A stretch of 64,000 bases of DNA from Entomortierella parvispora E1425 (taxonomy: Eukaryota > Fungi > Mortierellomycota). Shown piece by piece: positions 12,494-18,418 of the stretch. Numbering within the stretch: position 1 is the stretch's first letter; each line of letters begins with the position of its first letter. The stretch is from positions 868,001-932,000 of the forward strand of contig BQFW01000007.1 of the NCBI GenBank assembly GCA_020891255.1. The letters run 5' to 3'. A model generated the notes under the pieces. It did not search any database and was not told the origin of the DNA. It was given only the letters and a program-made list of their open reading frames with translations. The translations under genes and the position numbers were made by a program.

Positions 12494-13001
12494 ACAACAA
12501 AAAAGATTTTGCGGTCCTTTTGCAAAGACTTTTGATATCCTTCCTTCCTTCATGTTGCATGTCTAACTGAATTCTATACCAAAACGTTATAAAACGCCTT
12601 TCATGACCCTAAAAAAACAAAAAATCATCGCGTTTGGTGGCGAGAGAACAGCACGCAATTTTGGTGGCAAATGGAGGATTATGTCATTTCCATAAAATTC
12701 ACGGTTCATTTTTGTTGAATGGATTTTTATGGACGGCCTATGAGGGCGTGTGTAACATAGTCAGGGCCATTGCCAATGGACCGTCAAAACCAATGAAATT
12801 TTGTTTTCGCCCCTTTTTATCCATTATGAGATGATGAGCCACAGTCCCCCCTGACGGTCTGGCATCGTCTTTGATCAACGACTGCCTGTCGAATCTCCGT
12901 ACGTACTTCTCTCCTCCCTCCCTCCCTCCCCTCCCCTCTCCCTCCTCCCTCTCCTCCCTCTCTTCCCTTTCCTCTCACTCACTGTTTCTCTGTCGTATTT
13001 T

Positions 13002-16000
13002 TCATGTCTGCGTGTGTGAGAGCGTGTGTGCGCACGCGCATGTGTATTTTATTAAAAAAAAAAAAAAAAGGAAAAAAAAAAAAACTATGGTTGCTCTTTT
13101 GCTTTCACCTTTCCTTTTCCTTGCTCTTTTTTCTTCTGAGCTTCCAAACCTCTTGGAAACCTTTTTGGGCAAAAGCTTGTAGTATGCTGCAATTGAGCAA
13201 GAGTTGCAATCTTCCTTCAGCATGTCCTGAAAGTCTTGAAGAGCTTGTGCAATCATAGCCATGTCAATTGGTGTGTTATCCGGGATGTAGCGCAAGACCG
13301 ATTGAACAATCGTCTTCTTGAATAAGTAGAGACCTGCAAACCCGTTTTTCCCATCAGGGTTAGCCGAATTCTTTTCACTGCGCCATAGATTTGAATACCA
13401 TGAATCCATCGTCACGACTGAGGGGCTACCATTGACACCATAGAACCACTCTTGCCAAACCCCCTCTAGCGTGTTTGGCCGAGGGACCAACGTGCACAAA
13501 GGCATGTGCCTGGGCATAGGAGGGTCAACCTCGCCTCTCTCTCTTCTGTAGTGCGCAATTACTACAGCCACAGCTTGGATTTTATCTTGAGTTTTGACAG
13601 AATGGCCGCTGTCATCATGACAACGTGGATGGATAATGGAAGGAGGAGGAGCGACTAAGCTCGATTCTTCTACCCTCGATAATTGCAGGCTGAGAATCGG
13701 GGCACCTGGGGCTTCCTGCTCTTTTGACAGCAGACCCAAACGAGGTAGAACGGACCCTTCAGTGATACTCAAGCCTCCTTGTTCTTGTTCTTGGGTTATA
13801 GAGGTCATCCGACCAGCAGCATCTGACAGAGAGGCCGCTAATGACTTCACTAGGGCATCAATCTTGTCATTCACCTTGCCCATACCTTGAACGACACCCT
13901 CAAGGACATACTGATTACGCTGCTCTGCATGCAAGGCTCGGCGGTCCTGGTAGACTTGGAGCCTCTCAATGTTATCCGAGATCTTGGAGATCGCAGTGCT
14001 CATTGTTTGTTGTCGGGAAGTTTGCTGTGATATGAGGGCATTGGCGGCCTCCAGTTGCCGCTGAATAACAGGTGCCACGGACGTTAGGTTGCTAGGGCGA
14101 AGGGAAGTGTGGGCTAACGTTTCTGCCATCAACTTCTTAAAGGCCAAAAATTCCGGAGACCTGAATACTTCACGCTTGAAAATAGGGTGCCGGGAAGATT
14201 TGTTCTCGGCCAATAAAAAAGACGGCGGCGTCCTGCAGAATGACTTTCCGCAAGTGGGCAAGCAGACAAAGATGCCGTCGACGCGAGATTGCCTCATCAG
14301 AGAGAACTTTCCGTGCAGCCCTTTTCTTGATTTTTTTGATCTTAATATTTTCCTCTTGACGTCCGTAGAATATGCTCCGATCCAGCATGATGTTGTCGAT
14401 GGTCTGGATCCAGAAAGGGTCGTAGTGCTTTTTGTCCTCAGGATTTGAGCATGCACGTTCAATGAATGGGAAGACCATGCGCTGTAGCTCGAGGTCTGGA
14501 ATGACATTACGCTCCAGCCAAAAGTTTTCCGTACGGCCATTCTCAAATCCGGCCATTTGCAACGCCACAGATGCATCGACGCCGTCGAGGTAATGGGTGA
14601 TGAGTCGGTTTGTCCCCCAGCCGCCGTGTTTCGATATATCTTCGTGCGTGGCTCCAGTCAGCCGCGCCAAAAAAGCACCCAGTCGTCTACTGAGATGGGT
14701 TGCTTTGCCTTTGACACCAATGTTGAGATAATCCTGGACCTCGCGTGTCTGCTTGTACTGTGTGGCATATCGTATCTCTGATGTTCGTGTGGTGGACTTT
14801 GACAACAAGTGATAGTTGACCCAGTCGTGATCTTCTACTCTAGGCGGAGGGGCAGCCGATGAGGAAGTAGGCTAGATAATTCAGATTAGAAAGGGGTAGA
14901 GCCTCACCCAGCTCATAAAATGTACGTCATAATCAAAAAGTTCAAACTTACCAACCAGTACTCAAGCAGATAAAAGGCTAGAGCACCGACAGGACACGCT
15001 TCCACGTCTGGGTTTCGTACCACGACATTATATCGGATCTTGCCATTATTGTTCATTTTTCCTTGTCTTGTCATCAAAACCACACCAAGGACGAATTTTC
15101 TCTCCTGCTCCCGATCTTTCCGCACTGGACGTGCAACATTCTGGCCAAAGAGGTCGATCAATCTCATCCTGCGTGTGGTTTCACTGCGGCACATCATAAA
15201 AAATCGAAGGGCGGCGTCAGCTCGATGGCGAAGACCAGTTATCACTCGTGTCCATTTGCTCTGTTCGCCCTGTATATTATGGTGCCAAAAGTGCACCATT
15301 ACCATCTTGACATTCTCCAAAGGGTCCTCCTCGACAAAGTTTGCTGAGCCTTGATCGGTATCTGTCGCTCTCTTCGTGACCGCCACTCTTCTTTCGTAAC
15401 TCGTAATCAGGTCCCTCAGGTAATCCATCGGCTTTCTCTCGAGACACCTGAACATGACTTTGTTGTCTGGGTCCACACGTTGCTGACGGTAGAGTTCTCC
15501 GATGGCGGATGCGTGTAATTTTACCGTTGAGAGAGACGGTGCATTGGCCGGTAATCCCCTGTCGGAATGACATACATTCTCACCGAGGTCGTCATTGACA
15601 CTATCGCTGTCACTATCGTTGTCATCATCAGTGTCGTCGCTATCATGACCATCGCTGTCACTGTCACTGTTGTCGTCGCCTCTTTCTCTCTCGTCTTCAA
15701 TTGCTTTTCTTTTCCCGCGCATTCCAGTAGGTAAAATGATGATACCTGTTAACATGGAAGTTGACATAGAGGTCATTCTGATGAGAATACGTAGACAATG
15801 GAGATACAAAATGTGATTATCGGTTCTTACCCTTGCTTGGGTCCTCTTTCGATGCAGTTAAACAAGTCCAGTAACGCAAGACTTTCTCTTCGATGACGTT
15901 GGCGTCTGAGTATCCAGCTTCCGTGCACCATTTCTAGTCATTAATGAGTTTATGGGTGTTTGTAGTAGACGAATTAGAAAAAAAAAAAAAAAAAAAAAAG

Positions 16001-16588
16001 GATAAAGGGCACTGTCAGCCATGATCAGCCACGATCGTACACTTGGCCCAACTTACAGAGAATACGGCTTGATATCGGTCATAGAGTGCACGCGTCGACG
16101 TCTTGATACTTTCCCTTCGCTGTTCGCGGACAAGTTGCATACAGGCCAACTCCTTTTGTCTCAAGTCAAGCTCATGAGCTTGACGCGCCTTCTTGTCCGC
16201 ATGGAACTGCGCGACAATAGAAGTACTAGACGAGATTCCTTGCGTGTTGTCGTGTTGTCGTGACGCCGCGAGCTCGGACGCGTCGAGTGAATCCTGCAGG
16301 TACAACGAAGCCCAGAGAGATGGAGCATGAGTATATAGGCAAACAGAATGGCATAGAGGCACACAGATGGCACTGTTCATTCCGCAGCATGCGTAGAGCT
16401 GACGTAGTCGAGTCGAGCATTACATTAGATTCACGTTGAGATGAATCGACTTGCTGGGAGCATGGTTGCTGGCCAGTTGTCGGAGGCTCTCGTTTCTGTC
16501 GTTTTCGCGTCCGCTGTTGTTGCTGTTGTTGCTGCTTGGGTTCCTGGGGCGGTTCCTGGTCCTGTTGAGACAATTGATGCTTGGGCAT
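13002..16588 (-). CDS. Ndc10-like tyrosine recombinase fused to GCR1_C-like DNA-binding domain (~1,050 aa if the +1 frameshift is repaired)
   Basis: Exons 16588-16424 (least certain), 16293-16057, 15933-15831, 15745-14952, 14871-13002 with consistent phases. N-terminal ...YDRYQAVFSKWCTEAGYSDANVIEEKVLRY; YR residues MCRS (R), QGKMN (K), CPVGALAFY, THLSR (HxxR), HGGW, THYL (Y); C-terminal TLEGVWQEWFYGVNGSPSV (GCR1_C-like). One extra base in a T6 run at 14215-14220. Confidence 0.85.
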
Positions 16589-16792
16589 TTGGAGAAGGTG
16601 CGCCAATGAAAGAATGTAAAAGAATGATGTAGCAAATGTGCCGCATGCATGAACGGGCCCAGGCGCCTGACAACCCCCCTTTATTCCCGTGGACAAAAAG
16701 AAAATATCTGTTTTTTGGCCCTTGTTCAATTTCATGGGCTGGTTCATCGGGCCAATAATGGACTGCAGGCGCGACGACGATTGGCCGACTTG

Positions 16793-16802
16793 GTCACGTG
16801 AC
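16793..16802. promoter_or_regulatory. Perfect palindromic extended E-box GTCACGTGAC
   Basis: Exact 10-bp palindrome between the divergent recombinase gene and bHLH gene. It matches the CLEAR / Cbf1 CDEI-type consensus; function is inferred. Confidence 0.45.
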
Positions 16803-18418
16803 TTTATGGACCGTCAATGTCCAGGAAGCGTCTCATTCCGTTCAGAATGACCGTTGCCTGTCTTTGCAGAAAAAAAAGGGGGGTTTTCTGTGAGAAAGAG
16901 CAACAAAAACTTCATCGGTTGTGGTTTTTTCTTTTTGTCAGTCAGCCTCGTTGTTCTCCACAACAACAACAAAAACAATCAGTCAATACTGTGCAGTACA
17001 TGTACATGTACGCGCTCGGCAGAGTCATTGTCTGTTTGCGCTGACGTTGTTTCTTGAGGGTGTTGTGTGTTGATGTTGACGGTCCAGATTGTGTTCCTGA
17101 ATGGACTTGTGCAACAGGAGATGCAGAAGGGGGTCGAACGCGTTTTTGCCGCCAAAGCAGAACAGGAGAACAGAAAGAGAGCACACGGAAAAAAAGGTGG
17201 GGGGAGAAAGAGGCGGCAAAGATATTCATGCTGTGTCCCCAGCGATCCCTCGAGGCCGAGGGTTTCTTTTCGTGCAATTGATCGAAAGGGCAAAGAGCAA
17301 AAGGGGTCGAAGGGGAACGATTGCACCAATCGCATGTACGATGATGATGATTGGTGATGGTGATGGTGATGGTGTGGATGACGGTGGTGATGGATGAGGG
17401 CTCAAGGGGGTGGGGGTCAAGTCTGGCTTTGGCTTGCTGGGCTATATGCATCCAATAAAGCAGTAGGGTGATCGTAAAGGGTCTGTCGAATGGATGGAGG
17501 GATGGATGCCGCAGTCCTTGGCCTGTCTGTCTGCACGCCCGCCGGTCCAGAGGTTTTGCCTTGCTCGGAGTGAATGGTGTCACTCCCGCGCATGGGTGGG
17601 TGCATGTCGTTCGTCGCCATTCATTGCCCCCTCATTCGTCACAAGCGGCCTTTTCAAAGGGGACAGACAGGCAACAGAGCATGCGCAAGTTGAATATCCC
17701 CGAGCATGTCGCAATGAAGAAAAGACAAGAGCAAAAGACAAGAGGAACGTCCTTCGGACCATTGCACCATTGCACCATTGCACCTCTTTATTCTTCTTGC
17801 ATCCCAGCCCAAGCAAGCAGACAACCAAGCAGACAACCAAGCAAAGCAACCAAGCCAAGCAAAGCATCCATCCACAACAAACAACCCATCCCCAACACAG
17901 CAAGACACGCCCTCTCTCTCTCACTCTCTCTCTCTCTTCACCCCCCAGCCAGCCCCTTTCTTTTGTTTCCTTCGTCCTTGGTGGCACACACCCTTTTGTC
18001 ATCCTTCCTCTTTCTTCGTCTTCCTCTTTTTCCTCTTCTTGTCCTCATTTTCCTTCTCTCCTCCTCACCTCATCTTACCCTCACCTCACCTCACATCGCC
18101 CTGGTCTTTCTCCATATCAACAACACGACCCTTCCCTTCGTTTCCTTCCTTCGCTGCTAGTCTGCCCGATAGCCCTGTCCCTGTCCCTGTCCCTGTTCTT
18201 TCTTCTTCTCCCCCCAGCCATCCGCCCCTTAGCTCCTTTCCCCCCCTCCTTCTTGTCCTTCCCCCGTCGGAGAAGCAAAAAAACACATAACACGTTCCTC
18301 GCCTGTGCTCTCTGTCGTGTCTGTTCGCGTTCGCTTTCCCCTCCATTAGCCAAGACACGCACGCCATCCGCGCCATTCCCCCTTTTCTCTTTTCTCCTCT
18401 TCTTCTTTTCGCATTGCA

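Follow-up and report, generated by a model that had tools for sequence, protein, structure and literature searches.

The window analysed here, a 64,000-nucleotide stretch of contig BQFW01000007.1 from Entomortierella parvispora E1425, a fungus of Mortierellomycota (or Mortierellomycotina of Mucoromycota in the broad sense), contains a 4,154-bp CryptonF element whose sole gene is a five-exon tyrosine recombinase gene on the minus strand (Table 1). By comparing the copies in this one genome (38.9 Mb), homology was found to break off at bases 12684 and 16837 in every copy. A 5-bp direct-repeat core flanks all copies; at heterologous targets the cores are hybrids, and those at the gene-3' end agree with the inferred targets. 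A repeat search of the element detected no inverted or long terminal repeats, only short subterminal motifs. The 5' block just inside the gene-5' end is probably the promoter. In the metagenome relative L057, the 5' end is missing by 36 bp, where the contig stops, and the 3' end is too diverged for recognition. The whole region is very probably a single copy of a CryptonF DNA transposon that amplified recently.

Table 1. Features of the element, listed by position in the window
Feature	Position	Strand	Remarks
Whole CryptonF element, 4,154 bp	12684..16837	-	repeat unit 99.7-99.9% common to seven other full copies
Terminal 5-bp core TCATT, gene-5' end	16833..16837	.	TCATT or TCAAT among copies
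Terminal 5-bp core TCATT, gene-3' end	12684..12688	.	TCATT, ACATT or GCATT among copies
Subterminal motif TTTATGGACCGTCAA	16803..16817	+	16-30 nt inside end
Inverted counterpart of subterminal motif	12689..12709	-	directly adjoins core
Two more direct copies of subterminal motif	12726..12787 (12726-12734 and 12776-12787)	+	
5' block with CACGTG palindrome and CCAAT box	16767..16801	-	kept in a relative 72% identical overall
Exon 1	16424..16588	-	donor GTAATG; candidate start ATG 16588, second in-frame ATG at 16747
Exon 2	16057..16293	-	
Exon 3, KWC...GY motif	15831..15933	-	
Exon 4: acidic linker and N-terminal recombinase half (R and K)	14952..15745	-	Pfam NDC10_II 1.9e-8
Acidic Asp/Ser-rich linker, 6/12-nt coding repeat	15594..15686	-	
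Catalytic Arg I codon	15186..15188	-	
Conserved Lys codon, GK motif	15057..15059	-	
Exon 5: HxxR-W-Y recombinase half, long helix, GCR1_C	13085..14871	-	window copy: two extra bases break exon
HxxR (H-L-S-R)	14686..14697	-	H 14697-14695, R 14688-14686
Conserved Trp codon	14617..14619	-	invariant in alignment A1
Catalytic Tyr codon	14590..14592	-	invariant in alignment A1
T6 run, +1 frameshift relative to homologues	14215..14220	-	T6 in 7/8 copies, T5 in 1/8
TGA ending assembled frame	14170..14172	-	public model EMPS_06390 stops here too
Single predicted helix, ~105 residues, candidate coiled coil	13779..14096	-	AlphaFold2 pLDDT 50-66 here, 42 overall; weak
GCR1_C DNA-binding domain	13275..13487	-	Pfam PF12550, 5e-9, 36.8 bits vs cut-off 23
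Homopolymer with one base more than other seven copies	13127..13132	-	last ~14 codons shifted, ORF extended to 13002

Four GT..AG introns (16423-16294, 16056-15934, 15830-15746 and 14951-14872) interrupt the gene, and a scripted count of phases and stops on the joined exons showed that the exon phases join in frame across all of them; the fourth intron matches the public RNA-seq-guided model EMPS_06390. Compared with old copies, the exons are less diverged than the introns (p=0.0026 and p=0.013). The gene would encode a protein of ~1,027 aa, in which an N-terminal part, the acidic linker, an Ndc10-domain-II-type tyrosine recombinase, a long helix and GCR1_C are predicted to follow one another. 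Pfam domains were searched exon by exon, and NDC10_II was found above the cut-off on both halves of the recombinase, in exon 4 and in the first part of exon 5 (6.4e-9). GCR1_C lies in the same exon as the HxxR-W-Y half, and homologues are contiguous there. The R-K-HxxR-W-Y set is complete; it is conserved in the intact paralogous families (at least eight) and lost from decayed ones. AlphaFold2 gave a pLDDT of 51 for the annotated 305-aa EMPS_06390 piece (11-row alignment) and of 42 for the C-terminal part (6-row alignment), both too low to establish the recombinase fold, and single-sequence phmmer searches of exon 4 and the first part of exon 5 against PDB chains returned chance matches only.

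The frame of the window copy is discontinuous, the TGA being reached after 666 codons, and the part coding for the candidate coiled coil and GCR1_C is in the +1 frame, a 1-nt frameshift away from the recombinase. Since homologues from three other Mortierellaceae read continuously across this point, the frameshift was placed in the T6 run. An extra intron was considered instead and rejected, as no GT..AG interval of 3n+1 length fits without losing conserved residues and homologues are collinear over the T6 site. Further downstream, the other seven copies end at a TAG (13087-13085), whereas the frame of the window copy continues to 13002. Because of these two homopolymer frameshifts, the window copy is unable to make the full protein as assembled. 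Among the eight copies in the genome, exon 5 is open over 594 aa in C13b only, and none is open at every coding homopolymer site as assembled. One frame lesion was counted in C12, two in each of the window copy, C13b, C8a and C8b, three in C14 and C15, and four in C13a.

An earlier sequence-only reading had proposed a five-exon recombinase gene at 13002-16588 with all splice sites and phases intact. The gene proved real, and both the complete catalytic set, with every codon located, and the acidic D/S repeat linker proposed there were recovered. The splice sites and phase joins likewise held, but 'all phases intact' was an overstatement because the window copy carries the two frame-breaking homopolymer changes. 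Where a coiled coil had been expected after the recombinase, one helix is predicted, in a low-confidence model and in the +1 frame of the window copy; the GCR1_C-like end was recognized by Pfam, although out of frame with the recombinase in this copy. The proposed span covers the gene but falls short of the element, and the gene end at 13002 is a product of the extra base in 13127-13132.

Eight full copies, 99.7-99.9% identical, occur in the genome at six loci with unrelated flanks, and only two substitution sites were found among them in ~33 kb. Head-to-tail dimers are present at two of the six loci, and their tandem joints carry a single shared TCATT. Decayed derivatives were also identified, including an internally deleted copy (97%), a partial copy (93%) and an end fragment (100% identical). 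The differences between full copies are nearly all in homopolymer length (~17 indel sites vs 2 substitution sites); as the assembly is also Nanopore-based, the apparent lesions may be either real or Nanopore artefacts. Synonymous to nonsynonymous counts against old, dead copies were 7:14 and 5:11, from which purifying selection is not clear, and dN/dS among the young copies is impossible to calculate because of the two substitutions. Relatives were detected in Podila, Linnemannia and soil metagenomes at 61-79% amino acid identity, and P0006 is 73% identical to exon 4. The sequence-only reading had also suggested a young, potentially active family, and the survey of copy number and identity agreed with it: near-identical copies with exact ends lie at unrelated loci, and paralogous empty sites exist. 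A young, possibly active CryptonF family is thus well supported by the copies found.

Exact insertion into NCAWT is shown by eleven unoccupied paralogous sites (three and eight) in this genome. The unoccupied sites read ...ACAATAA and the filled sites ACATT-element-TCAAT-AA, so that each insertion adds exactly the element and one copy of the core to the target. The left junction retains base 1 of the target and the right junction retains base 4, which places both exchange points inside the shared CA. No target consensus beyond NCAWT was common to all six loci; G(T/G)C before the core is common to the donor and the transposon-end targets only. The terminal ACAAT of a Fanzor-carrying transposon hosts two young copies and one old copy. 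Two diverged subfamilies of this Fanzor/XPG transposon were entered independently at the terminus ...GTCACAATAA by copies 99.9% identical to each other, and an earlier insertion at this terminus is represented by a copy now 93% identical. Resident-copy junctions would have been used at two independent loci, giving the dimers. It is tentatively suggested, at somewhat short of an even chance, that the Crypton homes to a few privileged sites (resident-copy junctions and the ...GTCACAATAA terminus) and not to random NCAWT pentamers.

A circle and recombination model for Cryptons was reportedly put forward by Goodwin et al. in 2003. Applied to this element, the recombinase would join both ends into a circle with one TCATT between the subterminal motifs, and this site would then recombine conservatively with a near-identical genomic pentamer. 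Excision would be the reverse reaction, with the target restored. Dimers would form wherever a circle recombined at the junction of a copy already in place, a site at which the core and one of the arms are perfect. Such circle excision and reintegration is proposed here from one indirect sign, the single core at the tandem joints. The process in the model is reported to have been observed live for CryptonF-1_cRei (PMC9977147).

Several other explanations of the locus were considered. The family may be young but already dead or non-autonomous, the homopolymer frameshifts being real and no resident copy encoding the full protein, in which case the window copy would make at most a 666-aa recombinase without GCR1_C. 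This is a substantial possibility, though one we would not favor. Besides the lack of any copy open at all sites, T6 is shared by seven of the eight copies, an extra base in six of the eight leads to a stop eight codons past the exon 4 Met, and two non-homopolymer indels, at 16193 (both C13 copies) and 16314-16315 (C15), are probably real. On the other hand, the ratio of ~17 indel to 2 substitution sites is an error-like spectrum in an assembly built from Nanopore reads with Nanopolish and Pilon (PMC8759367), and short reads are unplaceable among eight identical copies. Two single-copy ORFs elsewhere in the window, 5.4 and 3.3 kb long, contain 10 and 8 homopolymer runs of 5 nt or more and are unbroken. 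The four-gamete test fails for the homopolymer state at 15704 taken with the substitution at 14142, implying noise or recurrent change, and the spread to six loci requires a working enzyme from somewhere. The T6 run could alternatively be a deliberate recoding site, at which the recombinase alone is made by default and rare +1 slippage during translation or transcription adds the helix and GCR1_C. The shift does coincide exactly with the boundary between the domains, in a U6A run common to seven of the eight amplified copies, and an analogous arrangement in bacterial IS elements can serve as a model. However, relatives in three other genera read through unshifted, a +1 slip is needed whereas U UUU UUA, read in the other frame, is slippery in the -1 direction, and the site is prone to homopolymer error, making recoding very improbable.

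Still more improbable is that a larger Crypton-Fanzor composite moves as one unit, with the recombinase mobilising an adjacent RNA-guided nuclease gene. Such an idea arises from the C14 and C8 loci, where the Crypton adjoins a transposon with TnpB/Fanzor-like and XPG-like ORFs, but no such neighbour exists at the loci of the window copy, C12, C13 and C15, and eleven copies of the neighbour end ...ACAATAA without any Crypton. Furthermore, the neighbour subfamilies are recognisably similar over only ~55 bp (87%) beside the site, while the Cryptons they contain are 99.9% identical. In both neighbourhoods a Crypton is nested in a transposon terminus, and neither forms a composite element. Domestication, in progress or complete, into a host gene of the Ndc10/Gcr1 type had been the other proposal of the sequence-only reading, and it agrees with the two Pfam domains shared with Ndc10 and Gcr1 and with the greater conservation of exons than introns. 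Unlike domesticated genes of the Ndc10/Gcr1/Msn1/Hot1 type, this gene is neither single-copy, syntenic nor immobile: its near-identical copies occupy non-homologous loci and keep their transposon ends intact, and both dimers and empty sites exist. Its catalytic set is also kept, whereas Ndc10 and Gcr1 lost theirs (PMC3212892). Copy number and empty sites already refute domestication, which is thus extremely improbable.

The preferred reading, a young CryptonF family, can be compared with known systems. CryptonF elements combine a tyrosine recombinase with GCR1_C and have terminal direct repeats of 4-6 bp (PMC3212892). Both domains occur here in the same protein, the recombinase with its catalytic R-H-R-Y residues, and the element has short target-matching direct repeats but no inverted or long terminal repeats, with copies at non-homologous sites as well as empty sites. 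By each feature tested it is an ordinary CryptonF, and the classification is unchanged. Fungal CryptonF elements (Crypton-Cn1 of Cryptococcus and the Rhizopus oryzae CryptonF) share the domain pair, the introns, the lack of such repeats and direct-repeat termini of 4-6 bp (Goodwin et al. 2003; Kojima and Jurka 2011, PMC3212892). CryptonF-1_cRei of Chlamydomonas reinhardtii (Lopez-Cortegano et al. 2023, PMC9977147) is described in the Crypton passages of that paper as an active element with CACCG ends, CAYCG targets and rising copy number. Both elements have a 5-bp terminal motif, a near-identical 5-bp target (CA-start targets, with CACCG entering CAYCG there and TCATT entering NCAWT here) and truncated copies. 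They differ in host kingdom and core sequence, and activity was observed there but is inferred from copies here. The present family also shows head-to-tail dimers, which those passages do not mention, and has repeatedly used the terminus of another transposon. A literature search found no paper pairing Crypton with Mortierella; judged by that search and by its features, this is probably a new CryptonF family in Mortierellomycota. Saccharomyces Ndc10/Cbf2 and Gcr1 share Pfam NDC10_II and GCR1_C with it, but these are single-copy host genes without a catalytic site, whereas R-K-HxxR-W-Y stands here within a mobile unit.

The tyrosine integrases of lambda, ICEs and Tn916/CTnDOT act through a circular intermediate and a short core that donor and target have in common. 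In bacterial integrative elements, a circle entering the junction of a resident copy gives a tandem array. Likened by mechanism alone, the process inferred here would be the same. The core identity needed here is only ~3-5 bp, however, and the exchange points lie within a 2-bp CA compared with the usual overlap of 6-8 bp.

To our knowledge, no class of eukaryotic DNA transposons has been studied less than the Cryptons, whose mechanism rests on the 2003 model and one set of live observations in Chlamydomonas. The family described here is young enough to give single-base resolution for its ends, core, hybrid junctions, dimers, deletion derivatives and empty sites. As the host can be cultured, is deposited as JCM 39028 and has public DNA (DRA010776) and RNA (DRA013164) reads, circle formation, target choice and the role of GCR1_C are directly testable. 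The mapped exchange points would imply an unusually short crossover region, and, if the homing is true, the family would be a case of att-like site selection directed at another mobile element by a eukaryotic transposon with a tyrosine recombinase.

By searching the window as DNA against its own genome (38.9 Mb, 20 contigs), a 4,154-bp unit (window 12684-16837) was found to be repeated at 99.7-99.9% identity, and the flanks of the six loci with full copies are mutually unrelated. The sequence-only reading had placed a recombinase gene at 13002-16588; this gene is real, and the true unit is larger. Across the eight full copies, substitutions occur at just two sites, 14142 and 16301, and indels at approximately 17 sites, nearly all in homopolymers. 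All copies start with xCATT-TCCATAAAATTC... and end with ...GGAAGCGTC-TCA(T/A)T, both dimer joints consist of a single TCATT common to the two units, and a search of the element for inverted or long terminal repeats found none. The copies are many and almost identical, have recombination cores at their ends and are missing from paralogous sites. The suggested domestication in progress is thereby refuted, many copies being present rather than one syntenic gene; the near-identity, exact ends and unoccupied paralogous sites bear out the alternative suggestion of a young family. Ndc10 and Gcr1 have lost their catalytic residues (PMC3212892), whereas these are retained in the E. parvispora element.

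Two incomplete copies have distinctive structures. The C10 copy (locus L038, C10:1297000-1306999) lacks window 12727-14193 and the final 29 bp, is flanked by a target-DNA duplication of ~45 bp, and is a mosaic with no substitutions relative to the window over 14194-14951 and 1-7% elsewhere, a pattern suggestive of gene conversion involving a young copy. The C7 fragment (locus L040, C7:2328002-2328481) meets unrelated DNA at window 16354-16356, a junction at which no recognisable core was found; it represents a truncation or rearrangement that happened very recently.

The C14 copy and the C8 dimer are each bordered by a repeat at one end and by unique DNA at the other; the repeat is the end of another, multi-copy transposon that ends in ...CACAATAA and comprises two diverged subfamilies. 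Unoccupied ends read ...AAAGGC ACAAT AA in subfamily 1 (n=3) and ...GATAGTC ACAAT AA in subfamily 2 (n=8; ACAATAA in six, GCAATAA and TCAATAA in one each), with unrelated flanks beyond, and the filled sites read ...ACATT-[element]-TCAAT-AA.... Comparison of the two states implies that insertion adds the element and one 5-bp core, nothing more. With TCATT as donor and ACAAT as target, base 1 comes from the target and base 4 from the donor at the left junction, and the reverse holds at the right junction; base 1 behaves likewise at the C13 locus (left GCATT, right TCATT). The bases kept at the junctions place both exchange points within the CA common to donor and target. The reverse reaction would be excision, and the circle would carry a regenerated TCATT regardless of the flanking cores, an expectation that matches the C8 dimer joint, which is TCATT despite outer cores of ACATT and TCAAT. 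As read from these junctions, the pattern is that of the proposed model of Crypton movement by conservative, site-specific recombination (PMC3212892, PMC9977147), which was observed for CryptonF-1_cRei, an element with CACCG at its end and CAYCG as its target. One unoccupied subfamily-2 end (locus L053, C13:1718290-1718610) reads GTC-TCAATAA rather than GTC-ACAATAA; Crypton excision with crossover in the GTC common to donor and target would produce exactly this sequence, and a point mutation is an equally plausible origin.

Subfamily 1 of the neighbouring transposon encodes a TnpB/Fanzor-like ORF with two CxxC pairs and an RDINAAVNI motif (Cas12f1-like_TNB, E=1.2e-4, below the Pfam cut-off), and an XPG/FEN1-like ORF lies near the same type of end in subfamily 2. 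Apart from the terminal motif, recognisable similarity between the subfamilies is limited to ~55 bp near the end. The terminal ACAAT of both is occupied by a 99.9%-identical Crypton, and a third Crypton copy (93%, internally deleted) occupies the corresponding position in another subfamily-2 copy; the deleted C10 copy is located 66 bp beyond a subfamily-1 end. Given ~640,000 CAWT sites and ~15 such termini genome-wide, the chance of at least two such termini among six loci is ~8e-9. The terminal ACAAT has thus served repeatedly as a landing site for the Crypton. These associations could be read as a composite Crypton-Fanzor element being the mobile unit, which is not supported: the neighbouring transposon is absent at four Crypton loci, and the Crypton is absent from eleven copies of the neighbouring transposon. 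Terminus targeting and the two independent dimers suggest a site choice narrower than the pentamer. An extended motif common to the targets was looked for and not found, G(T/G)C before the core being their only donor-like feature.

Several motifs lie near the element ends. The subterminal motif TTTATGGA, followed by CCGTCAA, is found 16-30 nt inside one end, is inverted and directly adjoins the core at the other, and has two additional occurrences within 100 bp; three of the five occurrences of TTTATGGA in the 64-kb window are less than 50 bp from the element ends. When the ends are joined, two 12-nt arms (10/12 complementary) surround a 29-nt centre with the core CA near its middle. At window 17076-17087, 239 bp beyond the element and in DNA not common to other copies, the subterminal motif ATGGACCGTCAA has an inverted 11/12 match, which is either fortuitous or left over from an earlier insertion. 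At window 16767-16801, ~200 bp upstream of the ATG, a palindrome GTCACGTGAC and a CCAAT box form a block that is 89% conserved in a metagenome relative (L057:1-36) of 72% overall identity; it probably serves as the promoter and may also belong to the recombination site.

The recombinase gene was modelled by reading from 16800 down to 12900, with the joins then verified by script. The five-exon structure described earlier holds: the four introns (130, 123, 85 and 80 nt) are GT..AG throughout, with GTAAGT-like donors and phases in frame across the joins. Intron 4 is independently supported by the public, RNA-seq-guided model EMPS_06390, which has the identical join (...LEYWL to PTSSS...). The evidence for introns 1-3 is weaker, namely the fit of signals and frame, together with a Y..Y...KWC...GY motif that recurs at near-equal position in paralogous families. 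Divergence from two old copies was lower in predicted exons than in introns (21/1299 versus 15/327, p=0.0026; 16/504 versus 21/286, p=0.013).

Pfam searches, performed exon by exon, matched NDC10_II in exon 4 (E=1.9e-8) and in exon 5 over its first 233 codons (E=6.4e-9), the two matches jointly spanning profile positions 7-307 of 317, and confirmed the GCR1_C-like domain at the protein end (E=5e-9, final portion of exon 5). At least 30 further loci of several families with the same recombinase type were found in this genome. The complete R-K-HxxR-W-Y set noted earlier is backed by its retention in intact paralogous families, W and Y being invariant in a recombinase alignment, and by its loss in visibly decayed paralogues (e.g., W to C, H to F or D, R to S). 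Both AlphaFold2 models (n=2) of pieces of the protein were of low confidence.

Gene features, element copies and neighbouring transposon (C, contigs of the E. parvispora genome; L, retrieved DNA loci)
Feature	Location	Strand	Remarks
Exon 1	16588-16424	minus	sequence reading, scripted check of joins
Exon 2	16293-16057	minus	sequence reading, scripted check of joins
Exon 3	15933-15831	minus	sequence reading, scripted check of joins
Exon 4	15745-14952	minus	sequence reading, scripted check of joins
Exon 5	starts 14871	minus	sequence reading, scripted check of joins
Candidate catalytic R	15188-15186	minus	
Candidate catalytic K	15059-15057	minus	
Candidate H-L-S-R (HxxR)	14697-14686	minus	
Candidate conserved W	14619-14617	minus	
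Candidate catalytic Y	14592-14590	minus	
Single full copies	C12, C14, C15		
Head-to-tail pairs	C8, C13		
Internally deleted copy	C10		97%
Partial copy	C14		93%
Right-end fragment	C7		482 bp, 100%
Fragment	C9		107 bp
Neighbour subfamily 1	L032:7103-10000 (C14), L045 and L046 (C4), L038 (C10)		four copies, 98-99.8% identity
Neighbour subfamily 2	L035:1-3020 (C8), L048-L055		at least 10 copies

The phases are not all intact as had been claimed, two frame breaks having been missed in the window copy. Its frame meets a TGA at 14172-14170 after 666 codons, and the helix and GCR1_C part lies in the +1 frame relative to the upstream recombinase. Since ...ILQDAA-x-x-LL...HPIFKR... is uninterrupted with equal spacing in three relatives (a 527-aa protein, Podila horticola and Linnemannia zychae) and in a distant paralogue in the E. 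parvispora genome, this frameshift is placed in the T6 run 14220-14215, where T5 gives collinearity with the homologues. The window copy alone has another extra base, in run 13127-13132; beyond it the frame continues via a poly-T tract to 13002, the position that had been read as the gene end. The other seven full copies end with ...EEKEQGKGKVKAKEQP and the normal stop, TAG at 13087-13085, and relatives likewise end with ...EEKEQGKGKVKAKEQP.

As assembled, each of the eight full copies carries a lesion at one or more of the six coding indel sites: C12 has one lesion (the T6 run only), the window copy, C13b, C8a and C8b (a and b being units of a pair) two each, C14 and C15 three each, and C13a four; exon 5 is open only in C13b (594 aa). 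These lesions could be assembly artefacts. The assembly was based on GridION Nanopore reads followed by Nanopolish and Pilon (PMC8759367), and because short reads are not assignable among eight identical copies, residual homopolymer errors are expected exactly here. Elsewhere in the window, two single-copy ORFs (5.4 and 3.3 kb) contain 10 and 8 runs of at least 5 nt, respectively, yet neither is broken. The ratio of indel to substitution sites is ~17:2 in the Crypton copies versus two indel events and five substitutions in another repeat pair, and sites 15704 and 14142 do not pass the four-gamete test. Two non-homopolymer indels, at 16193 (common to C13a and C13b) and 16314-16315 (C15), look real, and a family without any intact member is the less probable reading, yet one to be taken seriously.

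A second Crypton family, 36-46% identical to the window element in amino acids, has eight near-identical copies (C1:2421k, C4:2127k, C5:1724k, C6:91k, C6:729k, C7:2945k, C9:540k and C11:1251k), with the last exon open over 719-731 aa. Relatives of the window element at 61-79% amino acid identity were found in Podila, Linnemannia and soil metagenomes, those in the two genera indicating a Crypton family spread across Mortierellaceae. The element belongs to a known class, of which it is a new and very young member; its anatomy is unusually clear and its target preference possibly of interest.
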